A stretch of 64,000 nt of DNA from sequence record OQ603353.1; one strand, written 5' to 3'. This document shows positions 1 to 38,211 of the stretch, in pieces. The notes below the pieces were generated by a model that saw only the letters and a list, made by a program, of their open reading frames with translations, searched no databases and was not told the origin of the DNA. Within the stretch, counting starts at the first letter, position 1. Every line of letters begins with the position of its first letter. The position numbers were made by a program, and so were the translations under genes.

Positions 1-111
1 TATTCTCCTCTATATCTCCCTCTCTAGTTACTGTATTTCTTATTCTTATGCTTATGCGAAGATCGAGACACTTCTATGTTCGTCGTATCGTTGGATGCGT
101 CAGATGGGTAA

Positions 112-669
<558 letters not shown>

Positions 670-22456: not shown

Positions 22457-22605
22457 GTGATTGCCCTAAGTGTTGGGACACGCCGTGTGGCTGCGGCCAC
22501 CAGTACGAACAGTGGACAGAAGAACGTCTGCGTGACCACATCAAGATGCTGGAAATGGTGCTTGCCAAGAAGCAGGCGCAACGATACAAAGGAGAGTCCA
22601 AGTGA
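22447..22605 (+). CDS. 52-aa Cys-rich protein (MGLSDCPKCWDTPCGCG...)
   Basis: Translated by hand; fills the gap, with GTGA overlap to the next gene. Confidence 0.65.
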   Translation: MGLSDCPKCWDTPCGCGHQYEQWTEERLRDHIKMLEMVLAKKQAQRYKGESK

Positions 22606-22874
22606 GCATGTATCGAGTTGTGTTGCAGCCTGTATGCAGGGCGTTCGGCGGTTGGGTGAGCGACCCGGATCGTGTTGAGCGCAGTCACCTGATGAACACC
22701 ACGGATACACTGGCGGTGTTGCAGTTTGACGACAACGGCGAATCCACCGGCAAAACGTTGTCCCAGACCTACCTGTTCCTGTGCCTCGGTGACATTGTGG
22801 AACTCCACGACGACCAAGGCAGCATCGGACACCACCGCGTACTGGACGTGATGGATGCGGAGGTAGCGCAATGA
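22602..22874 (+). CDS. hypothetical protein
   Basis: AAGGAG upstream. Confidence 0.6.
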   Translation: MSMYRVVLQPVCRAFGGWVSDPDRVERSHLMNTTDTLAVLQFDDNGESTGKTLSQTYLFLCLGDIVELHDDQGSIGHHRVLDVMDAEVAQ

Positions 22875-23033
22875 ACGTGGTACAACATCGGGAAGCTCAA
22901 CCACCATGAAGGCGAGGTCATCCTGCATCCCGGCACCAAGTACAAGGTATCGCACCACTCCCAGCACACTGATCCCGACAGCGGGCACATCTACCACGTG
23001 GTCCACCTGACCGCACACAGTCCGAAGCACTAA
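22875..23033 (+). pseudogene. start-less 3' remnant of a His-rich ADP-ribosyltransferase
   Basis: 52 codons TWYNIGKLNHHEGEVILHPGTKYKVSHH...; the ExE-VILH-G-K-KV segment matches the C-terminus of the ART at 25511. Confidence 0.7.
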
Positions 23034-23039
23034 TCCGAA

Positions 23040-23073
23040 GGGCCTATCCTGCTAACGTGGGGTAGGCCCTTTT
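23040..23073 (+). terminator. Rho-independent terminator
   Basis: GGGCCTATCC / GGGTAGGCCC stem plus TTTT. Confidence 0.8.
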
Positions 23074-23157
23074 GCATAGCCCGGCGATAGGTTCCAATTT
23101 CGTGCAAGTTGTCCCTGAATCGAACCTGAACGGCAGCTGAACGAAAATGAACAGTGG

Positions 23158-23186
23158 TTGACAGGGGGATAGGGTCCAGGCATAAT
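23158..23186 (+). promoter_or_regulatory. host sigma70-type promoter
   Basis: TTGACA (23158-63), 17-nt spacer, CATAAT (23181-86). Confidence 0.85.
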
Positions 23187-23268: not shown

Positions 23269-25425
23269 ATGAAGCGCAAGTCCCCTCGGAACCGTCCCCT
23301 GATCGCTGAACTGATGCCGGTACGCGCTGCCGCCGAGCGCATGGACCTTCGGACCGCCAACCTGTCCAGCCACCTGATGACGGTGGAGTTTCTGGAGCAG
23401 GACGACTCCCAGGTTATCCTGACCTTCATGCTGAACAAGAATGACCAGCTGGTGGCCTCGGTGGAACTGGAACGTGCGGGTCATGTGCAGTGCGCCACCC
23501 CTTACCTGCGCGGTGCCATGCTTCGGAACAGCCTGAGCGCCACGCTTGACGACTATGACGTGGAGCGCGACCGCATCGCCTCGGTCATCGCCTTCCTCGA
23601 CAGCATCGTCTAACCCTTCGGAGCCCCTCATGAACGCCAACGTCCTCGCCCTGATCGTACAGACCGCCGTTGAAATGGGACTGGTGGTCCAGCATACTGC
23701 CAACGACATTACTGTCCTGTTTGATGAATCGGAGATGGAAGCGGCAGGCATGTTGGTGCAAGCTGCTCCGGCCCTTCGATTTGTGTATGGCCCTGTCCTG
23801 ACCGCCTACCCCGAAGCTCACATGGGATACCACGAAGGGGAGTTGCAGGCCATCGGGTTCGCCACCAAGGGCGTTCGGGGCGACGAACTGCGCGACTGCA
23901 TCGAAAAGATGAAGACCCACTTCAAGCCCGAAGCCGTCATGCCCCTCTTTACCTTCCTCGGCCTGCTGAACCGCAACGCCGCCAACCACTAAGGAACCGA
24001 CCATGAAGATCAAGACCATCCCGCTGACCGCCGTTGTTATCTCGGCCATCCTTTGGGCCGTCGCCATGATTGGCAGCGCCCCGTTCGTCGGCCCCACCCT
24101 TTCCACCACCGTCCGCGCCTAACCCACCCAGCATCCAAAGGAATGACCATGAGCAAGTACCCCGCAATCGCCAACCTCGATCACGTCATCACTCAGACCG
24201 TCCAGTTCGGGCTGGATGACTACGCGGGCCAGACGGATCACGTGCCCGAGGCCGTCGCCCACAGCATCGCCTACATCGCCAGCTGCTTGATGGCCCAGCA
24301 CACCACCAATGGTTACCTCGGCGTGCCCACCGACGCCGCCCTGAACGCCCTGCAAATCACCACGGTCCACATGAGCTACGAAGACCGACTGGCGCTGACC
24401 CGCGCCTTCATTGCAGAATACGGCGGCGTCAAGTGATCCGCATCCTCGCCCTGCTGATCGTCACCCTGTCCACCATCCTGACCTACCGGAACTAACATGA
24501 ACGCCAAGACCAAGACCACTTCGGACGTCAACGCACAGCGCGATGCCATGCAGAAAGCCAATGCGGCCGAGCAATTCCGTCGTCACTCCCTGCTGCACAC
24601 CATGACGGCCGACGGTCCCCTGTTCGTCCCCCTCGACAAGGCCCACACCTTCGGCCTCGCCCCTGCTGGCCGTGGCGGTGCTGCCTACCTTGATGCACTG
24701 GAAGCCCTCGGCCTCATGGCTGCACTGGTGCCCCACGCAACCAACCCGGACACGTGGGGCGGCTACCTCGTCTGCCGGTCCAGCTGGGCACGCGAGCAAG
24801 TGGGTCCGGACGACGCCAAGTTCCTCTGACCCACCCTGTAAACCTAGATTAGACCCTGCCGCCTTCGGGCGGCTTTGTCGTGTCTGCCCTCCCGACCTAA
24901 AGGAACCATCATGAACAAGCTCTCCGCATTCTTCTCCAACCTGATCGCCTCTTCCGCTACCGACATTGACGGGTTCTCCATCAAGGTCAAAGGTGAGCGC
25001 ACGCTGGAACTGCTGGATGAAGGGCGTGCCGCTGTGGCCGACCCTGAGTTCGTGCAGCGCCACGGCAACTACTGGCACTTCGTCGAACAGAAGCATCCCG
25101 AGTACCTGCTGGTCAGCACGGGCCGACTGGTCATCGTCAAGGTACTCCCCGACAACGCCATCGACGCAGCCGCATGAGTACCGACACCCCGTTGCCCAAC
25201 GTCGAGGCCGTGACCCACAACACCTTCGTGGTGCGCACGCAAGCAGGCTTCCGACAGGCCCTCAAAGCATGGGGCGGTAAGGTAAAGGGCGACACGATTC
25301 ACGACTGGCCCACCGCCTATCCGAGTCTTGTCACGTTCACCGTCGGCTACTGCGGGTATCATTACGTGCAGTGTACTGCCATCCACCTCAACACACTGAT
25401 GCCCGTAGTGGGCCGGCACGCATAA
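23269..25425 (+). other. putative early operon of small genes (23269-23613, 23630-23992, 24003-24122, 24149-24436, 24433-24495, 24497-24829, 24911-25177, 25174-25425)
   Basis: Follows the sigma70 promoter; strong C-ending codon bias; AAGGA RBSs. Confidence 0.7.
24858..24876 (+). terminator. GCCGCC-TTCG-GGCGGC hairpin, probable terminator
   Basis: UUCG loop with short T-tract. Confidence 0.6.
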
Positions 25426-25475
25426 GGAAATCCCATGCCCGACGTTACCCTGCACCTGTGCATCATCTGAGTCCT

Positions 25476-25485
25476 CTAATTTCAG
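25476..25485 (+). promoter_or_regulatory. candidate late promoter CTAATTTCAG
   Basis: Identical 10-mer 23-25 nt upstream of both His-rich genes. Confidence 0.55.
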
Positions 25486-25510
25486 GTGTCTTCCCCTAAG
25501 CAGAGAAACC

Positions 25511-26299
25511 ATGAGAGTCCTGTCTACCGTAGGGTCCAACAAGTTCGTCTGGACCGATCATCACCTAGACTACACCGCACCCGAAGACGATTCGCTATCT
25601 AGTGAGACTGCTTCCTCCGAAGAACACGCTCATGCGTTGAAACGTACTTCCTTACATCCCGAAGACCAAAAAGGGCACAAGGCACACGTAACTCGGGCAC
25701 GCCAAACATCCGAACACGTTGGCCATGCAGTAGATCACTACAGAAGTATCGGACACAACGATTTTAACCGAGAACTCCGCCATCCCTCCCACAAGGGTAA
25801 GATCAAAGGCAACGGTGACTACAACTTCACCGACCATTCGCTACATGATCTGCATAAAGGATTGGGGCACGCTACCAGTTATCAGCTGAAACACAAGACC
25901 GCTGTGTACCGTGGGGTGGGCGAAGCCGCCCACAAGATCAAGGCGCTCAAGAAGGGAGACACCTTCACTGACCACGGGTACACCAGTACCAGCCATAGCC
26001 CCTCAGTAGCCATTTCTTCCTTCGGTCATAGCGAGCACACGGGTACGCATCGAGAGCATCACGTCGTCAAGATTCATTTGCCCAAAGGCTCCAAGATTAT
26101 GCACGTACCTCACCACGTTGATGATGGCCTTACCCGGCATGAGGCAGAAACGGTGCTGCACCACGGTAACAAGTTCAAGGTCTTGGGTCACAGCGTCCAC
26201 GATCTACCGGGTAGTCCGTCCGGACACTCTTCCTCATTCGATAGCACCAAGCACCGGGTGCACGTAACCCACGTCAAGCTAGTAAAGCAACGCAAATGA
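25511..26299 (+). CDS. His-rich ADP-ribosyltransferase (R-S-E clade, VIP2/Alt-like)
   Basis: YRSIGHNDFNRELR, VYRG, GDTFTDHGYTSTS, HEAETVL; 39 of 262 residues are His (hand count). Confidence 0.88.
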   Translation: MRVLSTVGSNKFVWTDHHLDYTAPEDDSLSSETASSEEHAHALKRTSLHPEDQKGHKAHVTRARQTSEHVGHAVDHYRSIGHNDFNRELRHPSHKGKIKGNGDYNFTDHSLHDLHKGLGHATSYQLKHKTAVYRGVGEAAHKIKALKKGDTFTDHGYTSTSHSPSVAISSFGHSEHTGTHREHHVVKIHLPKGSKIMHVPHHVDDGLTRHEAETVLHHGNKFKVLGHSVHDLPGSPSGHSSSFDSTKHRVHVTHVKLVKQRK

Positions 26300-26306
26300 G
26301 CGACTC

Positions 26307-26328
26307 AGGCATCCGAAAGGGTGCCTTT
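26307..26328 (+). terminator. Rho-independent terminator
   Basis: AGGCATCC-GAAA-GGGTGCCT plus TT. Confidence 0.7.
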
Positions 26329-26355
26329 GTCGTTTCTGCGCTCCCGAGTCGAGGG

Positions 26356-26379
26356 TGCCATTTTGGCATCCTGTAAATA
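26356..26379 (+). promoter_or_regulatory. TGCCA-TTT-TGGCA plus TGTAAATA composite site
   Basis: Palindrome 3 nt before the promoter motif, then a GGAGG RBS. Confidence 0.7.
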
Positions 26380-26492
26380 TAGGGACAAAGGAGGCGCTAT
26401 GCCCCTCAAAGAACGGGTCCAACGGGGTGGCCCTTTTATCCCCGACTTCGTAGACGTTCGCTACATCACCCATAGCCCAACAAGGAAGCCCC

Positions 26493-29400
26493 ATGAGCCC
26501 GAAGCTCTGCATCATGAACGACACCCACAACCAGCAGTCGGCTGTGATCGTCACCATCCAGAAAGACGCGATTGACCACACGATAAAGTTTGCCTACGAG
26601 GGTGATCCGGAGGGCCCTCGTTTCCGCCTGCCCACCGATCGGGGTAGCCTGATGCGCCTGCGTGACCTGATCGACAGCGTGCTTGATCCGAGCGTGGTTC
26701 CTGTCAACACCCTGCGTCAGCTGGCCGACCGTTGGGCAGCTGATCGTGACTACAAGGGCAGCCCGGTTGACGACATTCGCGCGCTGATTGGCGACACGCA
26801 AGATTCAGCACCCACCCTCGATCCCAAGTATCAGACGGCGTTGAAGTTTGCTATAGGTCATCTGGACATGAGTGACCAACCCGAGTACGGACAGCTGCAA
26901 GAACTGTTGGCCATGACCGAGCGTGGGAAAGGTGCCTCCAACCCGTGCACGCACTACGAGGACACCACGACCGACTGCCACGTAGGACCGAACTGCATCT
27001 GCCAACACAAGGATTAACCATGAAACTTTCCCCAGCTACGGCCGATGCAATAGCCGACTTTATTCGCCTGCCCATTTCCAGCACGTCCCCTTGGGACCGG
27101 GTATCCTTCCACATAAACAAGACGCTCAAGGCCACTGCCACGTGTGGCACTTCGGTGCTGACAATTGTCAGCACAGACGAACACGACTTTGCCCAGCAGT
27201 TGCGCTTGGTGGTCGCTGGTGCTCGCCGCATGCAGGTAAAGGAAGATGAGGAAGGCTGTGAGTGCAGGGACGGTGAAGGATGCTCCGTGTGCTCTACGTT
27301 GCCACTCGCCAGTGCTCGTAAGGCGTGCAAGCGCGTGCGTAGGACTCCCGAAGAGGCAGTGCTAGAGTGTGACGAGTGCGATGCCGATCCGGGTGTGCCA
27401 TGTGACTGTGGTACCGAGAATGAGGACAACGCCCCTCTAGGGGCCAACTAGAAGCGAGCGCCGTGATGATCGCATTGTTCAAGATCGTAGTGACCTTGGC
27501 GTTGATCGGGGAAGCACTATGTACCGCGTGGGCCGCGTGGAGTGATCGAGCTTTGATGGGACGCACGTACACAATCCTCACCATCATCGCCGTGTTGTTT
27601 GCGGCCCTCGCAGTAGGCGCCATTACCTACCGCACTCTACAGTTGGATGGGACACTATCATGAACCTTGACGCACTCAGCGTTCTCTTCATCGTGGTATT
27701 CGTCCTGCTGTCGTTTGTGTTCCTGTGGCTGGGACGTGGTGCATGGCGTGGTCGTGCGCGTACCGGCATCGCCCCTGTCTTCGCCAGCGCCTTTGGTTTC
27801 GGTGCCTGCTACACTGGCATCCTCCTTCTACTGGAAAGGCTATGACCAACAAGACCTTCAACATCAAGACCGAGTTCTTCACCAAGCTGTGCATCTACCT
27901 GATGCTAGGTGGCCTAGTTACTGGTGTGATCGAACGCCAGTACGCCAAGGAGTGCCCCGGTGAGGCCGGTGGCATGTTGACCATCACCGAAGCTGGGATC
28001 GTCAGCGCCACGTGGCCTGCGTTGCTAGGCGCTACGGTGTTCCATCTACTGACCAAAGATGGGGCCGACCGTCCCACCCAATGCAAGAGCGCCCGAGGTG
28101 ATCTATGACCTTCGATCTGACCATCCAACCAATCTCGGGTTGGAGCGAAGAAAGGAACTGCTGGCTGCACCCGCCTAGCTTCGCCAAGGTGTACGAAGCC
28201 AGCCTCGATCCCGACCACCTGTTGCTGCGTGTGGTTCCCCACCGTCACAGCCATAGCGTCAGCTACCTGAGCGTCAAGGCCCAACACTTGGCGGTCAACG
28301 ACGTGGTAGTGTGGCCGTTCCCTACCGGCGAGCAGTTCGGGATCATCCACCACGTACCGAGTGTGATCTAATGGAAGAAGCCGTTAGCATGCTATACACC
28401 CACATAGACTGTCCGTATTGTGACAACACCTTTGAGGTCGAAGGCGATCAACGAGGTTCCGTAGTCACGTGCGATCATTGCGATAAGGAAATGTTGGTAT
28501 GACCAACCACGAACAAGCAATCACCGACGCACTGTGGAGAGACAATGGACACAATTGACCTGAGCAAACCCACACGTGTGGTCACTGGGACCGTGACTAT
28601 GCCTGCACCTGCCTTCCAGCAGATTCCGAAGGCCAACACGTACACTCGACTGTACACCCCAGCTGAAACCCTCAGTGACATGGGCCAAGAGTTTGACGCG
28701 GCGCTGCATGCTGCTGTCCAACCACTGGTTGCCACCTTTATTGAGCGTGGGGCCGACAGTCACGACATGGAAGCGTTGGCCGTCGCTATGGTGACCAGCG
28801 AGATTGCCAGTCTGCGCATGGCCCGGCAGCTGCGACGCCGCAACGAAGAACGCGAGGCAGAGCGGTTGCAGTTGGAGACCGACATTTTGCAGTATGGGGA
28901 TCGTGCCTACGAACTGTGGTGCGAACACCAGCACAATGCAGTCAAGCGAGAGAACCGTCCAACTTACTGGAGCCAGCTGCACCCACAACACAAAGCCGCG
29001 TGGGTCATTCGGGCCAAGCGCGAGGCAGAACAGACAGGATGCGAGGAGGCCCACGATGAATGATTGCCCGCTGTGCAAAGCAACTCGACCCACCTGCCCA
29101 TACGGTCCCGTGGTGGCCACCAACGTGAAGACCGGCAAGAAGGTATGGCTGTCTAGCGCGTTGGTCCAGAAGATCATGAAGCTTGTGCCCAATAAGGAGG
29201 CTACCGCATGACCGTCAAGCTCACAGGATGGACCAAGGCCGATGGGCACACGTTGTGGATGACACAAGATGGCGAACCTGTGTTCCGTGAAGGCCACCTG
29301 CCTGACCTCGGCCCCAACAAAGCTGTGCATCTTACGGGCAAGATGCCGCTGCTGGACGATCCTCGCTACCTCAAATACCCAGGTTACGAATACCTTGAGG

Positions 29401-29609
29401 CCATCAGCGACGATCAAACCCAGTACCTGATCGAGCCCAAGCGCAACACTCGCCTGCGGATACGTAGGAGCCCGACGTTGGTAGGTGGGTGGACTATGGA
29501 CATTCGGTCGTATGGTGAATGGGTTGTCTACCTTCCAGACGGTAGCAGCAAGACCATGATCCAAGATACGCTCGACAAAATCATTCGCTACGGTCCGGTG
29601 GGCGAATGA
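26493..29609 (+). other. run of small hypothetical genes (26493-27017, ~27020-27451, 27463-27663, 27660-27845, 27842-28108, 28105-28371, 28371-28502, 28545-29063, 29056-29211, 29208-29609), several with TM helices or CxxC pairs
   Basis: ATGA-coupled ORFs. Confidence 0.6.
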
Positions 29610-30385
29610 GGATTTTAGCCAAGTACGGCACCGGGAGTTCAGCTGTCTACATTGCAGTGGATGAGAGCACTCCCGATGTTGAGTACATCGTAACCTGCGC
29701 CGTAGAGCTACAGATTGGTCAGCAAGTTGAGGCGTCCAGTTGTTCGCTGCACACAGGGGTGCACACGCACCTTCCGTCTTACCTGTCGTTCCCATACCTG
29801 TACTCAGCCATGTCCGGTTTGTGGATGCTGTGCCGCCGTCAAAGCAATAGGCGTGCGCTGGTGCTGGGTTTAGGTGGCGGCAATGCCTCGCGTTACATTC
29901 GCTACACGTGGCCCGATGTAGCCCTAGTGTCTGTCGAAGCAAGTCCCGAAATGATCGCGGTGGCAAAGCTGTGGCCTGACGTCGGACCAGTCATTAAGGG
30001 CGATGCAGTGCAAGTGGTCAAGCGTACCGAAGCTGGGTACCTTGATTTCGTGCTGGTGGACTGCTATCCCTTCGAGAACAACACGATAGGCCAGCGGTTC
30101 TTTTCAACCGAGTTCCTGCGAGAGCTACGTAGTGTGTTGACCGACGACGGGATCGTGGCTTTCAACTTCATTGATGACGTGCCCCAGCTACCCGTAGCGG
30201 AGGTTGGGTTCAATGGAGGTGTGTTGGTGCGAAGCCCTGCGCGGTTACGGGAATCAAACAAGGTGGTGATGCTGACCAAGGCGCCGCTTGATCCCAACGA
30301 GTTTGTTACCGAGTGTCATTCATCCAATCCAGCTTACGCTTTGTCGCGGCAGCTGACTGACTTTACCTTTGAGGCATACCCATGA
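29606..30385 (+). CDS. spermidine-synthase-like SAM-dependent transferase
   Basis: ALVLGLGGG, VSVEASPEMI, GDA, VLVDCY, GIVAFN. Confidence 0.8.
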   Translation: MRILAKYGTGSSAVYIAVDESTPDVEYIVTCAVELQIGQQVEASSCSLHTGVHTHLPSYLSFPYLYSAMSGLWMLCRRQSNRRALVLGLGGGNASRYIRYTWPDVALVSVEASPEMIAVAKLWPDVGPVIKGDAVQVVKRTEAGYLDFVLVDCYPFENNTIGQRFFSTEFLRELRSVLTDDGIVAFNFIDDVPQLPVAEVGFNGGVLVRSPARLRESNKVVMLTKAPLDPNEFVTECHSSNPAYALSRQLTDFTFEAYP

Positions 30386-32914
30386 AAATCATTTTGCAAA
30401 TCCGTTGGCCCAGCGATGCTCCTGCCGCAGATGCAGCAGACGTGCCCCGTATCACCGACCGCTTGTTCAATCTCACGCGTCCGATTCTGGAAGAGTACGA
30501 CGCAGGCAACTACAATCTGGATGACGTGATGACTGCGCTGGAGAACGCAGGGTTCCTCAACCCGAGTCCCTACCGTCGCGCCGGTGTTGTCTCGCTCATC
30601 TGCCCAGCCCACGCTTACGAAGGTGCGGCCGATCTTGTCAGTACGGTCATGAAGAGTATTGCTGGGGGTACCGAGAGTGCAATCATTGTGTTCACCAATC
30701 CGGACATTCGCATTGGTGCAGAGGTTGGCATGTTCGTGGCTGGTCCTCAGTTCACACTGCTCAACGTGAGCTTCGACCCCAGCAAGTTCCTGTAACCAAG
30801 GAGACCGACGATGACTTGCCACTGTGGATCGTATTCGTGTATGGACTGCATCTGTCCAGATACCTGCGGTCTATGCGACCGAAAGTGGCACAAGTGCCAG
30901 TGTAGCACAGAGCCGCGTGAGTACGAGTTGGAGAACGGCCGCAAGTACCGAGCGGTCTACACCAAGACGCCGTTTATCGACGGCGAGTATCCGAAGGGCG
31001 GCATCGTCGTGCACGTGTGGAGCACCGAATGGTGCTACCTTGCCAACTGCGAATCGTGGGAGGCAGTGGACGAAATGATGCGGTTGCTGAAACGGCTGCC
31101 CGAACGCAAGGAGAGAAATGATGGGCAAATGGATTGACAAGATGCAGGTAGTGCATGGCACGACCATAGCCGAGTACAAAGCAATCTTGCTAGAGCGGGT
31201 ACGCCACCCTTCCAAGATGTACCGAGACTTGGGATGCAAGCCTGTTGTCAAGCCTATCTACCTGTACGAACTGACCGACGGTACGATTTTGAACACAGGG
31301 TATTATCCATTGTGCCGTTCGCTACGCACCATGCTGGGTGCCTCGATCAAGAGCGAGGAATTTTGGTACGGCGACCCGAGTGTAACGCCGCTCCTGTTCG
31401 CGCATGGAGCAATCGTCTTTCCTCAACGTGTGGAGAAGACCGCATGAATGGTACTGGCCTTGGCCCTCCACGTCCACGCGTGGTGACACTGTCCGAGTTG
31501 TACGGTAAGCCCTACCCTTTGATTCTTTCGATAGATCGCCTCCTTGAGGGCAACCACTTACCGATGAGTAAGCCCCTCAGTAGAGACGAAATCCTCAACA
31601 CCGATTGGACCCTCGTAGTTCAAACCTTTGCGCTGATTGCGTTCGGTCCAGAGGATATGGTAGCTGAGTTTGAACGTGCTAGGACCGAGGTCAAGCGTCC
31701 GCTGCACCCACGCACGTTCAAGAAGAACCGACTGGTCGAAGGTGTTTCCCTAGAGGGCACCTTCCTGATCCAAGGGCCTTTGCGTGGTTACGCACCCGGT
31801 GACAACGTGTGGCAACTCAGCGTTGATTACGCCGTTAACAGGAATCGAAAATGACACACATTGTCGCACCAAAGCCGAAGGAACGTTGGCTCAAGGAACA
31901 GACCACCAAGTTCCGTCCCCTCTACAACAAGCGCACCAAGCTTGGTTCGGGAAACAAGCTCACGTTGCTCGAAGAGTGGTGGACGGTTGAGAACACCGAT
32001 CACGTCGTAGTGGATGATGACGGCAAGCCCGTTCGCTTCCACTTCTTGCCGATGGCACAAATCTGCGCCGACTCTGTGAACGGTCCTACCGTTTCCCTGC
32101 AAGAGCAGACGCGCCAGATTCTACAGGACGTGGTGGACCGAAAGATCGACAACAACAAAGCAGTGGCTTTGTTGTTTGCAGTCTATGGGATTGACCTATG
32201 AAGAAGCTACTTAGGATCGTAGATGATTGGTGGTTGTTCATCGGCCGTGCTGCCATAGTGGTGTGCGTTACGTTCGTTGTCGGCATGATTGTATGGATCA
32301 ACGTGCTTACGATCAAGTCCAATCGTCACGCTAAAGAATGGTGCCCTCGACACAACGGCGTGCTGATCGAAGCAGGTTCCGGTAACGTCAAGTGCGTCAA
32401 GAGCATCGAATACTTCACCGAAGAGGAACTCAAGGCGCCATGACACCCAAGACCTTCCACATACAGGCAGGATACACCATTACCCACGGCGATCTGGAGG
32501 TAAAGAAAAACCGAGTCCGCTGGCGAGGTAAGACTATGGTGTACCTGGGAATTATGGAGCACGTTATCCAGCGTAACGTTCGTAAACTACTGCTGGCAGC
32601 GTAAAGGAGTCATGATGCACATTGTAGATTCGGGAGCCTTCACGATGGCGCTCAATGTACTGCGCCGTGCAGGTAAGACCGAAGTAGCTGACGAACTAGA
32701 GAAGGCCAGCAGGACGCTGCACCCACGTGACCTCGCTGAGGCAATGGACCATGTGCTACAGACCAAGACCGAAGACGTGATGGACGGCGGCTACTACGAA
32801 TCGCCCAACACTTCGTTAGGCGATGATGCACTGGAACAAATGACCACTGTGATCGACGGCAATCTCTGCTTGGTTCCGTTTGCTGGTCGCGTGCTCAACT
32901 CAATCAAACCATAA
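30382..32914 (+). other. run of hypothetical genes (30382-30795, 30811-31137, 31118-31447, ~31444-31854, 31851-32201, 32198-32443, 32440-32604, 32612-32914)
   Basis: Coupled ORFs without recognisable motifs. Confidence 0.6.
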
Positions 32915-32924
32915 GGAAAGACTC

Positions 32925-33245
32925 ATGCCATACTCTACCCGTAATCGTGGCCTCTACATCATCATCGCGTTGCTCACGGGCATGCTGGGGTTCCATAACT
33001 TCTACGCAGGTCACTTGAAGAAGGGTGGTCTCCAGTTCTTGGCCACCGTGGTCAGCATCCTGATTATCCCCGTGACTGCCATGCTGTCTGTCCTGATTTC
33101 TGGCGGCGATGACAGCGGTGGAGCATCCAAGCTGGTGATGTTCGCTGTAGTGGCTGCGCCTGTGCTCGCAGTGTGCAATGCAATCAGCGTGATCCTGGAC
33201 ATCGTTGAAACCAAGACCGATGGCTATGGCGATTTGATGCGTTGA
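32925..33245 (+). CDS. TM2-domain membrane protein
   Basis: IALLTGMLGFHNFYAGHLKKGGLQ plus further hydrophobic helices. Confidence 0.8.
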   Translation: MPYSTRNRGLYIIIALLTGMLGFHNFYAGHLKKGGLQFLATVVSILIIPVTAMLSVLISGGDDSGGASKLVMFAVVAAPVLAVCNAISVILDIVETKTDGYGDLMR

Positions 33246-33276
33246 AGAAGAGGCCCCAATTGGGGCCTCTTCTTTT
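33245..33276 (+). terminator. terminator (perfect 30-bp palindrome)
   Basis: AAGAAGAGGCCCCAATTGGGGCCTCTTCTT at 33245-33274, then TT. Confidence 0.8.
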
Positions 33277-33327
33277 GCCGGAAATAAGGAGAGATTGAAG
33301 ACCAGTTAAGGCCGAGGGCAAGCCTGC

Positions 33328-33337
33328 CTAATTTCAG
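33328..33337 (+). promoter_or_regulatory. candidate late promoter CTAATTTCAG
   Basis: Second copy, 23 nt before ATG 33361. Confidence 0.55.
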
Positions 33338-33360
33338 ATGACCTATGTAGAGCATCTAAT

Positions 33361-34116
33361 ATGCGCATCCTCAAAGCAACAAACAGTGCCGACAAGTCTA
33401 CGCCAGAGCCCAAGTATGAAGGCATTAGTGCTGGGCTGCGTCGCCTCGAACTTTCGTACATTGATGACACGGGTGTCGCCAAGCCAAACAGTGCGCCTAC
33501 TGTGCATCAGAAAAATCTGGAGAACGTGGCCTACAAGAATCCGAAGAAAGCATACAACAGCTTGGTCAAGGATTTGCGTGGGGCCAAGCATTTCAAAAAG
33601 GACTACGCGTACATCAAGGTGAAGAATACTGGTCATGGTGGCGGGCATCGTCTCCATATCATGCACGTTCCAACCCTGCACAAGGAACTGCACAGGATGC
33701 ACGCAGCGTACAAGTCCGGCGGGGAGACTGCTCTCAAGAAAGCTGTCCTCGAACACGCTAGATCAAAGTCGGGGCACGGACATGCAGGCCATGTCCGAAT
33801 GGTAGGCGATCAGGTTGGCATGGCAACGTTGCACAAGGAACACACAAAGAAGGGAGTGATGCACGATCTGTATCACCACCTTGTTACCAAGGAAGGCAAG
33901 AAGCTCCGAAGCTCCTCGCAATCCAAGGGCGCTCGGGCGCTGTGGACCAAGCTGTCCAAGCACAAGGACTTGCAGGTTCACGCGCTAGTCAACCACGGCG
34001 ACGGGGTAGTCAAGCTCAAGCCCGGATTGACACACGCATCTGGCCATAGCGTCTATGACAAGAAACACAAGCCCAACAAAGACGTGTACGCTCTGCACCT
34101 CAGCAAGAAGAAGTAG
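33361..34116 (+). CDS. His/Lys-rich protein with probable C-terminal GNAT-like domain
   Basis: LHKEHTKKGVMHDLYHHL...LRSSSQSKGARALWTKL resembles the rG.G.a..lY / S..QS.ga..lW pattern of phage GNATs; 25 of 251 residues are His. Confidence 0.6.
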   Translation: MRILKATNSADKSTPEPKYEGISAGLRRLELSYIDDTGVAKPNSAPTVHQKNLENVAYKNPKKAYNSLVKDLRGAKHFKKDYAYIKVKNTGHGGGHRLHIMHVPTLHKELHRMHAAYKSGGETALKKAVLEHARSKSGHGHAGHVRMVGDQVGMATLHKEHTKKGVMHDLYHHLVTKEGKKLRSSSQSKGARALWTKLSKHKDLQVHALVNHGDGVVKLKPGLTHASGHSVYDKKHKPNKDVYALHLSKKK

Positions 34117-34121
34117 CCCAG

Positions 34122-34153
34122 AAAGGCCCCTAGAAATAGGGGCCTTTTCTTTT
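34122..34153 (+). terminator. Rho-independent terminator
   Basis: AAAGGCCCCTA-GAAA-TAGGGGCCTTT plus T-tract. Confidence 0.85.
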
Positions 34154-34172
34154 GCCGGAAATAAGGATGGGT

Positions 34173-34197
34173 TGCCAAAATGGCAATCCTGTAAATA
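34173..34197 (+). promoter_or_regulatory. TGCCA-AAA-TGGCA plus TGTAAATA composite site
   Basis: Same architecture as 26356 and 41224. Confidence 0.7.
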
Positions 34198-34217
34198 TAG
34201 GATACAAGGAGGACGAT

Positions 34218-35594
34218 ATGATCCCAGACTTTGACCTGTCCAAAGCAGTGCGCCAAACCAAGTTCGTGGGCCCCAACTCGAAGACAGGTAACTGCACTGA
34301 GGCGGCTATTGCCACCCTGCTGCAAATTCCCCTAAGCGCCGTTCCCGAATTCAATCGTAGCGGAGACGACGCATCTGACTTTTGGGAGAGCGTTGAAAGC
34401 TTCTTGGTAGAGCACGGGCTCTACATCAAGTACACCACCAAGCACAAACAAGGTGTGTATCTCGTAAGCGGCCCTACGGTAAGGGGCCGGGGTCACCACA
34501 CTGTCGTCTACAAGGATGGACAGTTGGCGTGGGACCCGCATCCCTCCGACGCAGGCGTCACCGAAGACGTGTGGTGCCTACACCTTCAAGACACGGATCC
34601 ATACGCATGAGTACCGACTGGAGTAAAGCAATGGTTATTGACTGGGAACTGCTTGCCCTTCGTATGCTTGCAGCCAACCAACTTGGCATCCGCATTGAGC
34701 AAAGCGACGGTCATCGTTGGATCATCGAAGACCTGTGTTCTGAATTCTGCCTGCACCTGTTCGGGGAGCCTGTACCCCTCAACGTGGTGGACCCTGAGCG
34801 TGAAGCCTACCAAAAGGTATACGGTTCCTATAGCGCTGCCCTCGATTTGATTGACGAACGGTTAGTTGCCAAGGGCCACAAGATTCTGGCAGAGCAATTC
34901 GATCACATCAATTACCACAACGACCTGTCAAACATCTTCGGAGACGGCGTGCAATGATTTTCAATGAGGATGAACTCAACCGAATAGCCGATCAGCTTGT
35001 GGGCAAGACCGCTGAGATTTGGGATGCACGTACGATACGCGAAGTAGCCCGAATAGGCGAAGTTCCCTTCTACCTGAAAGGCACCGTGGAGCAAATGACT
35101 GTAAGCGCTCACGTAGGCAACATTGTCGCACGTGACGAACAGGACCAACCCATCTACCTGACGATCAAGGGCTGCATTTGCTGGGAGGGTCGATACACTC
35201 TGCGCGCCGACCTGAACTACGAACCGTACATGGGCTCTGTGGGAGCCGTCCCTGTTGACATTGAATGGAACCAACCATGAGCAAGATCAAATTCCCGCAG
35301 GGCATGCGGGCCTATCGTCCACCGATGCACGCACCCCGACACGCCGTTACGGCACTGACCCTCGATGTTGAGGAATTCATTGCATTCCTACGCGAGCAGA
35401 AGTCCGACGTGGTACGCCTCAACGTGTTGGCATCCAAGGGCTCGGGTCATCATTACGTCTGTGTCAACGAGTGGCGACCGGGCAACCCTGTGCAGGAAGA
35501 GGCACGTGCGAAGCGTGCGCCTAAGCCGCAGCCGGATCATCATGATTACGAGGATCACAGCGTTCCACTCAATGACGAGGATATTCCTTTCTGA
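34218..35594 (+). other. four hypothetical genes (34218-34610, 34607-34957, 34954-35280, 35277-35594)
   Basis: AAGGAGG RBS and ATGA coupling; the first has NC..A and GHH..V, a peptidase-like Cys/His pattern (weak). Confidence 0.62.
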
Positions 35595-35764
35595 TGCTAG
35601 GACCTACTGATACCATCACAGAGTTCCCTGTGCCACGGCCCCGAACGTATCCCTCTGATGGAATGTTTACATGGGAAGGGCATCGCATCCACACTCACAG
35701 CAAGCCCGAGCCGCGCAGGCGGGGCAAGAGTAAGTACACCCGAAAGAAGGGGAAGCGCAAATGA
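35594..35764 (+). CDS. 56-aa peptide with basic C-tail RRRGKSKYTRKKGKRK
   Basis: Translated by hand; TGATG overlap upstream and ATGA overlap downstream. Confidence 0.75.
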   Translation: MLGPTDTITEFPVPRPRTYPSDGMFTWEGHRIHTHSKPEPRRRGKSKYTRKKGKRK

Positions 35765-38211
35765 GCAAGACCCTGTTGACCCAGCACGCTGAGGCTCATA
35801 CCAACCTGACCATGTTTGGTGCGATCCAGTCCCTGTGCGAAAGCGGTTGCTTCTACGGTGGACGGGTCCACCCGGCACTGGACAAGATCATCAAGATTTG
35901 CAAGGCCGAGCAGCGCAAAGAACTCAAGATCATGGACAAGGCTGCGGAGAAGCTGAAATGAAATTCGATCTACTGACCGCGTATACGATGTTCGACCTTG
36001 CAGGTTTCAAGGTCACCAGCATCACTGAGATTCCGAACGACTATTGGCCTCGCACCTCCCTGTACGAACAGCTGCGAGCCGAAAGTCCTTGGTTCGTCGT
36101 AGGCACTGACTTCGGTGGTGTTCGCATCGGTTGGCGCAAGCGCGTTATCTCGATTGAGTGGGATAGCGCTATGCACAGCGGCATCATCACCGAGGACGAC
36201 ACCACCAAGGACCCGCATATGGTTCACGCGTGGAGTCGCGCTGATGCAGTGAAGTACCTTAGCAACCTTCGGGAGGCAGCGTATGCAGCCAAGAGCCGCA
36301 GGCCCACCCAAGTACAGGTAGAATCCAATGAATCTATGTGAGCTTCTGCATCGACCGTTGTTCATGCCCAAGGACGCAATCAAGTGTAGCTACTGCGGCT
36401 ACTACAACATGCCCAATACGGAACGCTGCCTTGGCTTCCTGTGTGGTGCCAACCTGCGCCCTACCGGCGGCGGATTCGTGGAGTTCTAATGACTAGCGCG
36501 CCTGAAACCACAAGCGTTACAGCCCGTATCGCACAGTCCATCCGTGAGCAGATCGGTACGGACTTGCCTACGATCACTCTGATGAATGGACAGATCATCG
36601 ACATTCAAGAACTGGCGCGTGCTATCGCAGCGCGTCTCGGACCTCCCAAGCCATGAACACATACATCTACCGACCGTACATCCAAGGCCCCGGCACTCAC
36701 ATGCTGACGGTTGCGACAGATAGGCAGTCTGCCGTAGTCAACATTGTGCGCAACCTCAAGCACTATTTCCCCGATGACGTTGCCAAGTTCAAACCCGAAG
36801 CCCTGACTTCTATGGTCAACGGGCAAACGTCCATCCTCCTCCTGAATGATACCGCTGTCATCCTGCCGCCTGATAGCACCGTGTCGATTGGAGTTTGACG
36901 TGAGCTACTCAGTGTTGTTCCGGCCGCAGCGTGGCGACTTTCAAACTAGCTACGCTGAGACTGTGCGAGTACGTAACACCCCCGAGGGTATTGCTGCACA
37001 CCTGACTCAGATACTCGGTCAGGTGGTGGGCCCTTCGCAAATCACATTCGAGGATGCAGGCTTTGACAAGCGCCTCGGTACCAACAATCAATACGTTCTT
37101 CTCGACGGCCAATGCGTAGGCTACGTTTGGGAAGGCGACGAAATCTAAAGGACAGACCATGCTTCCGCAAGCCCGTTACCTCGTTGCTTTCAGCAACTGC
37201 TACTTCCACTTCACGGACACAATGATGCCGCTGCGCATTCTTGAAAACTGCGACGTGGCCATTCAGATCAAGCCGAACATGGAGCTAACTCTCATCAAGG
37301 TTCGTACCGACACTGCGCTGCTCAAGCTGCTGAATGCCGAGACTTCAAACGAAACCAAAGACCTGTACGACGGCAAGCCTCCGAGAGAAGACAAGCGTGA
37401 TTGGCGCGCGTTCAAGATCGAGTGCATCAACAACAGTCCCATCCCGGCTCCACTCATCTAAGGGGCCGCGTATGGGAACTTACATTGGTGGATGCGCCGA
37501 GCGAAAGACTGACTCGGGCTGGGAGGTTGTAGAGATTCACCTGCCGTGGCTGCTGGACTATCAGTGCTACGAATACTTCGGATGGCTTGGTGGGGTGCGC
37601 AACTATGCAGCTGTGTCCTCGGTTGCCGAACAACGTGGCCTACCTGCCGACGTATCCAAGGAGGCTGAGGTTGAGTACGATCACTGCTACGATGCTAGTT
37701 CCCCTAGTTATGTCACCGTGGAGGAACTGCTTGCCATCGACTATCAGCAGTTGGTTGAGAACCGTAGATGGGATGGCACGCATCTACGCTCAGGGACTTT
37801 AACGTGCGAGCCGGGTCAGGGCGAGACGATGACCCTTGAAGAATACCTCGGTCCGGAGCGCGTGGCCGAGATTCGTTCCCTGCCAGATAAGGGTATCGAC
37901 CGACTTGTGTTTTGGTTTAGCTGAGGATCGTCATGTTCGAGAAAATCAAACGCTACTTGTTCGTCCAGTTGATGCGGTACTTCATCCACGACAAGATCAA
38001 GTGGCAGGCAATCTTGCACGTCTACTGGATTGAATACCGCAAGCGTTACACCGAAGAGACGACGCCCACTTCCCTTGACAGCATCTACACTGTCTTGAAG
38101 GAGGCATCCGAACGTGAGTTGGCTGCCAGCGCACGTGATCGCAAGATTCGGGAACTCAATCAGCAAGTAGCACAAATCACTAGCGAGAACTATCACGACT
38201 ATTGGGACTAA
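35761..38211 (+). other. run of small hypothetical genes (35761-35961, 35958-36341, zinc-ribbon ORF ~36328-36490, 36489-36656, 36653-36898, 36900-37148, 37159-37461, 37472-37924, 37933-38211)
   Basis: Coupled ORFs. Confidence 0.6.

Follow-up and report, generated by a model that had tools for sequence, protein, structure and literature searches.

Alt of phage T4 and the T-even internal proteins (IPI/II/III and their variants) are non-homologous, basic and non-essential proteins that have only a short N-terminal leader in common, a capsid targeting sequence (CTS) that directs them to the prohead. The internal proteins are polycationic and the gp21/CTS signature reads (L/I)-x-E (PMC9026906), with the leader as the sole part shared among these basic proteins (PMC3012670, PMC12373910). 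The genes for Alt and the internal proteins lie in variable regions outside the head module and vary from one close relative to the next (PMC9026906, PMC3012670, PMC12373910). Modular shuffling in T4-type phages has also been described for PeSL (promoter-early stem-loop) regulatory cassettes (PMC2839356, PMC4122927). T4 ModA and ModB, other R-S-E ADP-ribosyltransferases (ARTs; PF03496; PHROGs 3895, 802 and 832) and MuF-fused ART toxin domains have an R / S-T-S / E-x-E catalytic signature.

Here we compare with these systems two genes, ORF-A and ORF-B, from a window of 64,000 nucleotides (bases 1–64000 of the 227 kb genome of Xanthomonas phage Ep026, a jumbo myovirus that represents a new genus). 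Ep026 carries T4-type replication and tail-sheath genes, and the two cassettes sit in a hyperplastic region of small ORFs. The features described in a sequence-only reading of this DNA were all found where it placed them, one gene remnant excepted (Table 1). The modular family that it proposed holds up, in that proteins of unrelated fold (ART and GNAT-like) begin MR(I/V)L, are extremely rich in His/Lys and are encoded between a common 5′ motif and a terminator. The best fit, to which we give an even chance, is that these are leader-tagged effector enzymes in shuffling cassettes, in the manner of Alt and the internal proteins of T4.

Table 1 Positions of the features discussed, numbered from the first base of the window
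Feature	Position	Strand	Description
ART remnant	22875..23030	+	C-terminal 52 codons, ExE-type 'HEGE' region, 21% His
Intrinsic terminator	23036..23078	+	Closes the remnant's transcription unit; -28 kcal/mol, z -5.3
Sigma70-like promoter	23158..23186	+	TTGACA-17-CATAAT, 11/12 matches; starts unit toward ORF-A
CTAATTTCAG of ORF-A	25476..25485	+	25 nt before ATG
ORF-A	25511..26299	+	Predicted His-rich R-S-ExE mono-ADP-ribosyltransferase, 262 aa, starts MRVL
Intrinsic terminator of ORF-A	26300..26337	+	-21.7 kcal/mol, z -4.9, U-run after
Palindrome TGCCATTTTGGCA and CCTGTAAATA promoter-like element	26356..26379	+	Drives next unit; TGTAAATA at 26372
Left direct-repeat copy	33249..33293	+	Terminator of TM2-domain gene and spacer TTCTTTTGCCGGAAATAAGGAGAG
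ORF-B cassette	33294..34170	+	877 bp; edges ambiguous within direct repeat
CTAATTTCAG of ORF-B	33328..33337	+	23 nt before ATG
ORF-B	33361..34116	+	Polycationic His/Lys-rich protein, 251 aa, starts MRIL; unnamed family
Right direct-repeat copy	34121..34170	+	ORF-B's own terminator and spacer TTCTTTTGCCGGAAATAAGGATGG
Palindrome TGCCAAAATGGCA and CCTGTAAATA promoter-like element	34173..34197	+	TGTAAATA at 34190

The encoded proteins and their His-rich class

ORF-A matches PF03496 at 34.2 bits (Pfam cut-off, 23.4 bits), and its PHROG matches are ART toxin and Alt-like families. The predicted catalytic triad, Y133-R134, S159-T-S161 and E211-x-E213, is kept in full in the homologue P0004. The sequence thus firmly assigns ORF-A to the ART family as a putative Arg-type ExE mono-ART, in agreement with the earlier description of an R-S-E ART of about 15% His (39 His in 262 residues, 14.9%). 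ARTs of cultured phages are only about 20–35% identical to ORF-A. Like the phage-encoded ARTs of the ModA/ModB type, ORF-A may have a host-modifying role; it differs from these ARTs in being a stand-alone protein of 262 aa with an acidic N-terminal stretch of 60 residues and 15% His. Its net charge is +8 at pH 7.5, and its AF2 model has a pLDDT of 34.

Upstream of ORF-A lies what its sequence identifies as a decayed second ART gene, also present in PhiXhv-16. This remnant has no start codon, follows immediately on the stop codon of ORF 22602–22874 and shares 52% identity with the ORF-A ExE region. The sequence-only reading had correctly recognized an ART remnant of 21% His that closes a transcription unit, but had assigned it to a segment that does not contain it. 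A sigma70-like promoter, rather than a TGCCA/TGTAAATA site, follows on its 3′ side.

ORF-B contains 10.0% His and 15.1% Lys, carries a net charge of +29 at pH 7.5 and belongs to a family with only 15 representatives among 1.84 billion proteins searched. Its only close homologue is the metagenomic protein P0002 (63% identical). Pfam returned no match to ORF-B, GNAT models included; a profile search of the PDB found nothing, and Foldseek against the PDB gave E values no better than 0.07. Profile matches through P0006 and P0010 reach GNAT domains, the strand and helix order of the AF2 model is GNAT-like, and Foldseek against BFVD matched a viral NAT_SF protein (E 2e-3), weakly suggesting that ORF-B is a remotely GNAT-like, acyltransferase-type protein. 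The earlier account of its His and Lys content stands, whereas its GNAT-like label draws solely on remote evidence. As in the GNAT superfamily, the predicted core runs β4-α3-β5-α4, with HxxKGVM at the motif A position; unlike GNAT proteins, ORF-B has Met instead of Gly or Ala at the last position of motif A, a long inserted helix (residues 103–134) and conserved Y-H-H-L...Q-S-x-G-A...W-x-K-L residues specific to its family.

Five ORFs in the genome contain at least 10% His (z-scores +3.2 to +5.5). Their codons have an unremarkable composition at third positions, and no enrichment is seen for Gln, Asn or Pro: the excess of His is under selection at the level of the protein. At least three unrelated families of proteins show it, in distant phages too; P0004 has 12.0% His and adjoins a second His-rich protein, of 408 aa and 9.8% His, with which it forms a two-gene island of opposite orientation. 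The remaining Ep026 members are ORF 137359, after the tail tube gene; ORF 160638, which starts MRIL and is flanked by lysozyme-like genes and the tail-spike gene; and ORF 171320, a few kb upstream of head-fibre and connector genes. An MR[ILV]L start, encoded by different codons in each gene, is found in 3/5 His-rich ORFs compared with 2/264 others (p=3e-5). The start is common to ORF-A and ORF-B, as had been claimed, without being exclusive to His-rich ORFs. Among homologues, P0002 starts MRLL and P0004 starts MRIL.

Gain and loss of the ORF-B cassette

ORF-A and ORF-B each end in a strong terminator followed by a TGCCA-N3-TGGCA/TGTAAATA site, just as the sequence-only reading described; the ORF-B terminator has a folding energy of -21.0 kcal/mol (z -3.6) and a U-run after it. 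In the phages PhiXhv-12/15/16, which are about 97–97.5% identical to Ep026, the ORF-B cassette is missing, a clean presence/absence difference of 877 bp whose empty site falls exactly at the junction of terminator and operator-promoter site. The comparison shows ORF-B to be gained or lost as a unit, through recombination between direct repeats of the 'terminator + spacer' type. The proposal that self-contained cassettes move is thereby upheld at least for ORF-B. ORF-A shows 0/789 nt differences from PhiXhv-12/15/16 and lies in the longest zero-difference tract (1173–1298 nt) of the 13 kb compared.

This arrangement resembles that of PeSL cassettes, in which an ORFan lies between two terminator-containing composite elements while a phage about 97% identical has a single element; the insertion is likewise intergenic, in a hyperplastic region, and the cassette supplies its own terminator. 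It differs in that the repeated unit of Ep026 is a terminator plus TTCTTTTGCCGGAAATAAGGA, that a phage-specific TGTAAATA element and its palindromic operator, not a sigma70 consensus, form the promoter next to it, and that the cassette's own 5′ control element, CTAATTTCAG, is unlike the resident promoter. Under the favoured explanation, each cassette would consist of a short 5′ leader with CTAATTT(C/T)A, an ORF that begins M-R-(I/V)-L and encodes a His-rich, polycationic modifying enzyme, and, at the end, a strong intrinsic terminator, the whole lying directly 5′ of a resident TGCCA-N3-TGGCA/TGTAAATA promoter site. Close relatives would swap such cassettes by recombination at the repeated terminator-promoter junctions.

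The upstream motif and transcription of the two genes

The element CTAATTTCAG, noted earlier as otherwise unseen and 23–25 nt upstream of both ORFs, indeed occurs just twice as an exact match when all 227 kb of the genome are scanned, both times in the window. Only 0.16% of gene pairs have a 10-mer in common at a similar upstream offset. We considered whether A/C-rich strand bias, non-coding frames and a coincidental motif could account for these features. One frame was rejected on such grounds: the '31% His' frame at 77–637(-) is truly the antisense of a poly-Asp repeat. ORF-A and ORF-B, by contrast, are backed by homologues and by Pfam or profile matches, their third codon positions are normal in composition, and the motif is unique genome-wide and kept in L004; an artefact is refuted and retains a negligible probability.

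The wider motif CTAATTT(C/T)A is rare and non-randomly placed upstream of genes, with seven copies in the genome, 6/7 of them intergenic. Co-orientation with a called gene start 33–45 nt downstream is seen for 4/6 intergenic copies, one of which precedes the head-tail connector gene; the other two, at 180685 and 213888, precede uncalled ATG-initiated frames. We sought a late-promoter consensus for Ep026 and none was derivable; the copies are too few for CTAATTT(C/T)A to be a general late promoter. The genome-wide scan suggested earlier did yield further His-rich ORFs, but CTAATTTCAG precedes none of these three.

A scan of IMG/VR for the motif with an ORF added no further case, leaving only two to three instances. 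Such scarcity would suit ordinary morons or selfish accessory genes without a common mechanism, whose shared features reflect cassette-end ancestry or local recombination and whose His-richness is a peculiarity of the lineage that has nothing to do with delivery (metal binding, for example). P0005, which shares 52% identity with ORF-B, contains just 4.9% His and lacks the motif, and the upstream region of P0004 also has none, as this account would have it; close homologues without these traits also weigh against the favoured explanation. We nevertheless consider it improbable: CTAATTTCAG stands 20 nt before the ATG of the P0002 gene, perfectly conserved despite 63% protein identity, and neither the spread of His enrichment across unrelated families and distant phages nor the MR[ILV]L association, with its gene-specific codons, fits a local quirk.

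ORF-B is insulated by a strong terminator, which has a folding energy of -26.7 kcal/mol and lies about 85 nt upstream; the gene would therefore need its own promoter, and we infer that the cassettes carry one. Upstream of ORF-A no terminator intervenes directly, so transcription from the sigma70-like promoter at 23158 could reach it, past a single weak hairpin (24858). T4 modA and modB are read from an upstream sigma70-like promoter. ORF-A and ORF-B could similarly be unpackaged host-takeover enzymes of the early or middle phase. They would be co-transcribed with the small early ORFs around them, and their targets in the cytoplasm would be ribosomes, RNA polymerase, nucleic acids or defence proteins. 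Their His/Lys composition would then reflect binding to nucleic-acid-associated targets, and CTAATTTCAG with MR(I/V)L would be a translation-initiation or regulatory module, such as an mRNA-binding repressor site; the motif does lie in the would-be 5′UTR, 20–25 nt before the ATG and 5′ of a weak AGAG Shine-Dalgarno-like element. Both genes are co-oriented within arrays of early-type small ORFs, which speaks for such enzymes and against the favoured explanation. The insulation of ORF-B points the other way, and we regard the unpackaged alternative as possible though rather unlikely.

Comparison with T4 head-packaged proteins

Under the explanation that we favour, the cassette genes would be expressed from their own, probably late-class, promoter, and their products loaded into the virion and delivered alongside the DNA, with which they would travel by virtue of their strong positive charge. 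As infection begins, they would act by ADP-ribosylation or acylation on defence proteins or on host targets associated with nucleic acids. With non-homologous bodies behind a common N-terminal leader, the class would play the part that Alt and the internal proteins play in T4, and Alt, like ORF-A, is an ART. The Ep026 cassettes differ in including a GNAT-like protein in their putative cargo. To our knowledge, the extreme His content (10–15%) has not been described for T4 internal proteins.

ORF-A and ORF-B start MR(I/V)L and have no (L/I)-x-E site near the N-terminus, another difference from the T4 internal proteins. A tblastn search of Ep026 for T4 gp20, gp21 and gp23 found nothing, tail sheath alone being detectable, so a T4-type prohead core is unproven. 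The missing leader and the undetected head protease would both be expected of unpackaged early enzymes. That reading leaves unexplained the other His-rich/MRIL ORFs in tail and baseplate modules and the CTS-like leaders of distant relatives, one of them within a baseplate operon. A T4-type (L/I)-x-E ending at residue 5–12 occurs in 6/13 distant ORF-B relatives and in P0004 (background 7.8%, p=2.4e-4). The gene for P0011, a relative of ORF-B, has baseplate genes on both sides, gp5-like on one and PAAR/gp25/gp6 on the other. These observations indirectly support virion packaging of the cassette proteins, as do their polycationic character, which resembles that of the T4 internal proteins, the positions of ORFs 137359 and 160638 near tail genes, and the fusion of ART-domain relatives to head proteins (phrog_595; a 'minor capsid component').

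The ORF-B cassette and its empty site in relatives

In Ep026, ORF-B, the gene for a His/Lys-rich protein, occupies an 877-bp segment (33294–34170) lying exactly between a spacer and an operator-promoter, and the close relatives PhiXhv-12, -15 and -16 keep the corresponding site empty. In alignments to these three genomes, window positions 32604–33297 and 34122–35941 both abut a single 49-nt stretch. Positions 33249–33293 and 34126–34170 both align to one copy, at 10217–10265 of the compared locus L001, and the same holds in 3/3 PhiXhv phages. At the empty site the stop codon of the TM2-domain gene is followed by a terminator, TTTTCTTTTGCCGGAAATAATGAGAG and then GTTGCCAAAATGGCAATCCTGTAAATA. The Ep026 segment adds a leader with CTAATTTCAG, ORF-B, ORF-B's own terminator, whose loop is different, and the spacer a second time. 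Searches with tblastn showed ORF-B to be absent from PhiXhv-12, -15 and -16. As the sequence-only reading had proposed, the segment directly precedes the operator-promoter site. Ep026 with ORF-B and PhiXhv without it provide a natural, isogenic-like pair for assessing the effect of the cassette on host range or counter-defence, in phages that are under development for biocontrol of lettuce leaf spot.

This arrangement resembles promoter-early stem-loop (PeSL) shuffling in T4-type phages, where an ORFan lies between two terminator-promoter elements and a near-identical relative has one element (PMC2839356, PMC4122927). The ORF-B locus likewise holds an ORFan with two terminator-containing repeats in Ep026 and a single copy in its close relative, and judged from sequence its topology is that of PeSL-mediated modular shuffling. 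Unlike PeSL cassettes, which use a strong sigma70-consensus early promoter, the locus has a non-sigma70 promoter of the CCTGTAAATA type, and its cassette brings a distinct 5′ control element of its own. The indel shows that shuffling at terminator-promoter repeats is not confined to the systems known in T4-type coliphages but operates with a non-sigma70 promoter class as well.

Features of the Ep026 genome considered here
Feature	Position	Strand	Product or composition	Setting
ART remnant	22875–23030	+	52 codons, 21% His, no start codon	immediately 3′ of the stop codon of the upstream ORF
ORF-A	25511–26299	+	262 aa	small-ORF array
TM2-domain membrane protein gene	32880–33245	+		adjoins the ORF-B insertion site on the 5′ side; supplies the left direct-repeat copy through its terminator
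ORF-B	33361–34116	+	251 aa	small-ORF array
ORF 137359	137359–137739		126 aa	directly 3′ of the tail tube gene
ORF 160638	160638–161003		121 aa, MRIL start	after two lysozyme-like genes, before the tail-spike gene
ORF 171320	171320–173263		647 aa	next to SprT-like and topoisomerase-IB-like genes, a few kb 5′ of the head-fibre and connector genes
(C)CTGTAAATA	9234, 19218, 26372, 34190, 41241, 46595, 52545, 63291, 63597	− for the last two		window; 9 more elsewhere in the genome
TGCCA(AAA/TTT)TGGCA	18805, 18967, 19040, 19247, 26356, 34173, 41224, 42376, 42393			window

ORF-A, the gene for a His-rich ADP-ribosyltransferase (ART), is present in all five phages (Ep026, Ep032 and PhiXhv-12/15/16) with 0/789 nt differences. 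It lies in the longest zero-difference tract of the 13 kb compared (25151–26555 region), which runs for 1173–1298 nt between Ep026, from Israel, and PhiXhv-12/15/16, from France. Within the tract lie ORF-A with its leader and terminator and also the next promoter site; the flanks of the tract differ by 1–8%. Other zero-difference runs are mostly 300–550 nt long, and one of 1134 nt touches the edge of the compared region. Such a tract fits recent recombinational spread or unusual constraint and is no proof of mobility. The proposal that these genes move as self-contained cassettes is borne out for ORF-B, by a clean 877-bp indel, but not established for ORF-A.

The genome of Xanthomonas phage Ep026 (OQ603353.1) comprises 227,420 bp, of which the window is positions 1–64000. 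'Erwinia phage Ep032' is 100% identical to it over 10 kb around the ORF-A/ORF-B region, and PhiXhv-12, -15 and -16, jumbo myoviruses of Xanthomonas hortorum pv. vitians, are ~97.5% identical over the same 10 kb, with gaps. A new genus with no detectable relatives has been proposed for the PhiXhv phages (PMC13340338). T4-type replication and recombination genes occur in the window (UvsX-like, gp46/47-like, clamp loader, RNR and primase), and from 19 to 46 kb there is an array of co-oriented small ORFs without assigned function, a hyperplastic, early-type region. Rfam detected no RNA families within 22–36 kb. By eye, a possible tRNA gene lies at ~129.65–129.8 kb of OQ603353.1 (locus L011, ~15.7 kb), 5′ of ORF 129821, with an arm ...GTAGCTCAGCTGGTAGAGC.... 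The database hosts, 'Xanthomonas sp. Q' for Ep026 and 'Erwinia sp. YA1' for Ep032, belong to different bacterial orders despite the 10 kb of identity, and both records (OQ603353.1 and OQ603359.1) are flagged UNVERIFIED and unannotated.

Two unrelated His-rich proteins

The ORF-A product (14.9% His) matches Pfam PF03496 (ADPrib_exo_Tox) over residues 64–226 with 34.2 bits, above the curated cut-off of 23.4, and its PHROG matches are an ART toxin and Alt-like proteins. With its triad intact (Y133-R134, S159-T160-S161 and E211-A-E213), it is the R-S-E ART of 15% His described from sequence. The sole database homologue, the metagenomic protein P0004 (36% identity), scores 35.8 bits against PF03496, and R134, S159, E211 and E213 are invariant in the pairwise alignment. 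In R-S-E ARTs an ExE motif goes with arginine-directed mono-ADP-ribosylation, and ORF-A is predicted to be an arginine-directed mono-ART. The AlphaFold 2 (AF2) model of ORF-A, built on a two-sequence alignment, has a mean pLDDT of 33.8, and a PDB sequence search gave no match.

A decayed second ART gene (the ART remnant) has 52% identity to both ORF-A and P0004 in their ExE regions, keeps H-E-G-E and is also carried by PhiXhv-16; its existence means that such genes also decay. The sequence-only reading had named this remnant as a third case that also ends a transcription unit. The remnant exists and is followed by a strong terminator, but it lies outside the stretch to which that reading assigned the cassettes, and downstream of the terminator stands a near-consensus sigma70 promoter (23158–23186), not a TGCCA/TGTAAATA site. 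In another metagenomic phage (L015, 2583–4513), the genes for P0004 and for a His/Lys-rich protein of 408 aa together make up an island that is transcribed opposite to the flanking genes and bounded by a terminator on each side; this island is an independent moron-like unit.

ORF-A and ORF-B were rejected as paralogues, being unalignable (BLASTP E ~0.5). ORF-B contains 10.0% His and 15.1% Lys. Pfam and PHROG, GNAT HMMs included, gave no match to ORF-B, to its metagenomic homologue P0002 or to the relatives P0005 and P0008. A profile of ORF-B and P0002 picked out only 15 of 1.84 billion representatives at E ≤ 1e-3. It matched P0006 (E 2.5e-8) and P0010 (E 7.8e-5), both multi-GNAT proteins, in segments that coincide with Pfam Acetyltransf_1/7/10/CG, a weak, short-range similarity over ~60–90 residues. 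The family core of ~60 residues reads ...G-x-M-H-D-L-Y-H-H-L-V-T-x-x-G-x-x-L-x-S-x-x-Q-S-x-G-A-x-x-x-W-x-K-L....

The AF2 model of ORF-B (pLDDT 68; ~80 over residues 60–251, with the first 57 residues disordered) shows the GNAT strand and helix order plus one extra long helix. Foldseek comparison of this model with the PDB gave a best E of 0.075, with GNATs frequent among the low-ranked matches; in BFVD it matched uncharacterised phage proteins (E 1e-5) and a NAT_SF protein (E 2e-3, TM 0.41–0.49). A PDB profile search returned nothing useful. GNAT motif A, Q/R-x-x-G-x-G/A, binds the acetyl-CoA pyrophosphate; its position reads T162-K-K-G165-V-M167 in ORF-B and Q-G-K-G-(I/V)-M in the relatives P0008 and P0017, and is degenerate in P0011–P0013. 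On the profile links, the predicted topology and the Foldseek matches, a GNAT-like relationship is plausible for ORF-B but remote. The composition given in the sequence-only reading was confirmed; its GNAT-like label draws on remote profile and fold matches, with no family HMM match. Among cultured phages, only Ep026 and Ep032 encode an ORF-B relative, and P0011 and P0012 have no cultured-phage homologues outside the Ep026/PhiXhv genus.

Control elements at the two loci

Exact copies of CTAATTTCAG stand at 25476, 25 nt before the ORF-A ATG, and at 33328, 23 nt before that of ORF-B. These two are the only copies in the window and in the whole 227 kb genome, as expected of a motif said to be otherwise unseen. 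The motif is real: it recurs 20 nt before the ATG of P0002 (63% identity to ORF-B), encoded by a metagenomic phage of only distant relationship, in which conservation does not extend to the remainder of the leader. A 10-mer shared at a similar upstream offset occurs in 58 of 35,245 gene pairs (0.16%), many of them real promoter pairs. The relaxed form CTAATTT(C/T)A has seven genome copies, 6/7 intergenic. Four of these lie 33–45 nt 5′ of, and co-oriented with, called genes (ORF-A, ORF-B, the gene for a 171-aa membrane protein at 112887 and the head-tail connector gene at 178830), and the two remaining intergenic copies, 180685 and 213888, stand in front of ATG-initiated frames that are not called as genes.

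CTAATTT(C/T)A is thus a non-random regulatory element and probably a promoter. A strong terminator ~85 nt 5′ of ORF-B means that ORF-B must have its own promoter; ORF-A could also be transcribed from the sigma70-like promoter at 23158. Its one structural-gene client, 178830, weakly suggests late timing for the element. At two exact and seven relaxed copies per 227 kb, a general (late) promoter was rejected. Searches upstream of genes generally, or of structural genes, found no enriched motifs beyond CCTGTAAATA and Shine-Dalgarno-like words, and no late consensus could be derived. All 68 matches from an IMG/VR scan for the motif with MRxL ORFs were short or unrelated frames, in keeping with chance occurrence.

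Strong hairpin/U-run terminators lie 3′ of both ORF-A and ORF-B, each followed, as had been noted from sequence, by TGCCA-N3-TGGCA and CCTGTAAATA. The promoter-like element (CCTGTAAATA; TGTAAATA; (C)CTGTAAATA) has 18 copies in the genome, and since every one of them lies between genes in the orientation of the gene that follows, mostly within ~50 nt of it, TGTAAATA represents, on this positional evidence, a genuine class of phage-specific, non-sigma70 promoter-like element. None lies in the tail/baseplate block; the clients are replication and nucleotide-metabolism genes (clamp loader, MazG-like, primase and DHFR-like) and small-ORF arrays. A sigma70 reading of the TGCCA/TGTAAATA site was rejected because spacing and hexamers do not fit, and no sigma70-like site occurs at 26340–26400 or 34150–34210. 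All nine copies of the exact palindrome TGCCA(AAA/TTT)TGGCA fall within 18.8–42.4 kb, with four clustered at 18.8–19.3 kb and two in tandem at 42.4 kb, and it is likely an operator for a local regulator.

A His-rich class and its likeness to T4 internal proteins

Five real ORFs in the genome have a His content of 10% or more, where the mean over genes is 2.9%; the search for further His-rich ORFs thus added three (137359, 160638 and 171320) to ORF-A and ORF-B. Their His z-scores range from +3.2 to +5.5, with nothing unusual at third codon positions and no enrichment of Gln, Asn or Pro. A/C strand bias was rejected as the cause on these grounds: with other residues of A/C-rich codons not enriched and third positions ordinary, the His-richness is selected at the protein level. 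His content is also high in P0002 (13.4%), P0004 (12.0%), its 408-aa neighbour (9.8%), P0011–P0016 (8–15%) and P0019 (11.5%) but is not enriched in P0005 and P0008. Net charge at pH 7.5 is +8 for ORF-A, +29 for ORF-B, +23 for P0004 and +26 for P0002, and the proteins gain 15–30 further charges by pH 5.5.

The class also has an N-terminal tag. An M-R-(I/V)-L start occurs in 3/5 His-rich ORFs versus 2/264 other genes (Fisher p = 3e-5). Starts of the MR(V/I)L type in P0002 and P0004 use different codons, and the tag is therefore a protein-level feature, not merely shared DNA. ORF 171320 (L012, 7320–9263; 13% His) is 100% identical in PhiXhv-16, but in PhiXhv-15 the identity is only 68% and spans 69% of its length; it has an ~85-aa region in common with ORF 137359. 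Its metagenomic homologue P0019 keeps the SprT-like and topoisomerase-IB-like neighbours. No cultured-phage homologues of ORFs 160638 and 171320 were found outside the Ep026/PhiXhv genus.

Alt and the T-even internal proteins are basic and non-essential, differ widely between relatives and enter the host along with the DNA, where they counter defences or help to take over the cell (PMC9026906, PMC3012670, PMC12373910). They are non-homologous except for a 7–19-residue N-terminal capsid-targeting leader, cut by the prohead protease after (L/I)-x-E (PMC9026906). ORF-A and ORF-B are similar in being basic and in joining unrelated bodies to a common MR(V/I)L start. Together with the ORF-B cassette and the protein-level selection for His, this agrees with the core of the earlier proposal, which stands up better than anticipated: the modifying enzymes form a modular family comparable to T4 Alt, tagged by a leader and carried on cassettes. 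P0004 has I-L-E at residues 3–5, and (L/I)-x-E ending at residue 6–12 occurs in 6/13 distant ORF-B-family representatives versus 7.8% of Ep026 genes (p = 2.4e-4). P0011, one of these, is translationally coupled within a baseplate operon of T4-like type, with a gp5-like gene on one side and PAAR, gp25 and gp6 genes on the other, and head-protein fusions are found among the ART-domain relatives.

Unlike their T4 counterparts, ORF-A and ORF-B have no (L/I)-x-E in their first 20 residues, and no gp21-type protease was found in Ep026 (gp21 itself was sought by BLAST only). Of the T4 virion genes, gp18 sheath alone matches by tblastn; T4 gp20, gp21, gp22, gp23 and gp24 gave no significant match, BLAST being too insensitive for a distant protease, and PHROG and Pfam scans of ~40 large Ep026 ORFs revealed no capsid, portal or protease genes. 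The His-rich enzymes might instead be cytoplasmic, in the manner of ModA/B, and never packaged, a possibility that we consider real but doubtful. For the packaged-effector reading, drawn by analogy, we judge the case evenly poised; late expression, virion packaging and a His-based switch are what we infer under it.

If the proteins are packaged, the T4 paradigm of injected, hypervariable, leader-tagged cargo in the phage-host arms race would extend beyond Tevenvirinae to a phage with unrecognisable head genes, and would take in enzymes of a new family without a name, which has only 15 representatives in 1.84 billion proteins. Novel relative to known systems are the pairing of putative IP/Alt-type cargo with shuffling of the PeSL kind, the new protein family and the compositional signature. 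The 10–15% His is convergent across unrelated folds and could serve as a simple predictor of delivered proteins.

A more specific version, which we think improbable, would make ORF-A, ORF-B and 160638 a hitherto undescribed, virion-delivered MR(I/V)L effector class of a new jumbo-phage lineage, with the untagged 137359 and 171320 perhaps in a broader set, the 10–15% His a functional adaptation and CTAATTT(C/T)A a dedicated regulon promoter. Its relatives would be small YHHL/GNAT-like proteins in T4-like baseplate or head contexts. His would act as a charge switch, protonated in DNA-packed or acidic surroundings, or as a metal switch, so that the proteins could co-condense with DNA, pass through the tail and then refold or become active in the host cytoplasm.

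Two further frames were observed. A spermidine-synthase-like (polyamine aminopropyltransferase) ORF at 29606–30385 (+) begins MRIL and is not His-rich. Since polyamines serve T4 as counter-ions in the capsid (PMC3012670), this shared start could be meaningful or fortuitous. At 110–637 (+) of the window, a poly-Asp open frame has runs of up to ~40 D alternating with KGKGKK-type blocks; GAT/GAC tandem repeats at 124–557 underlie it, and its antisense yields a spurious '31% His' ORF at 77–637 (−).
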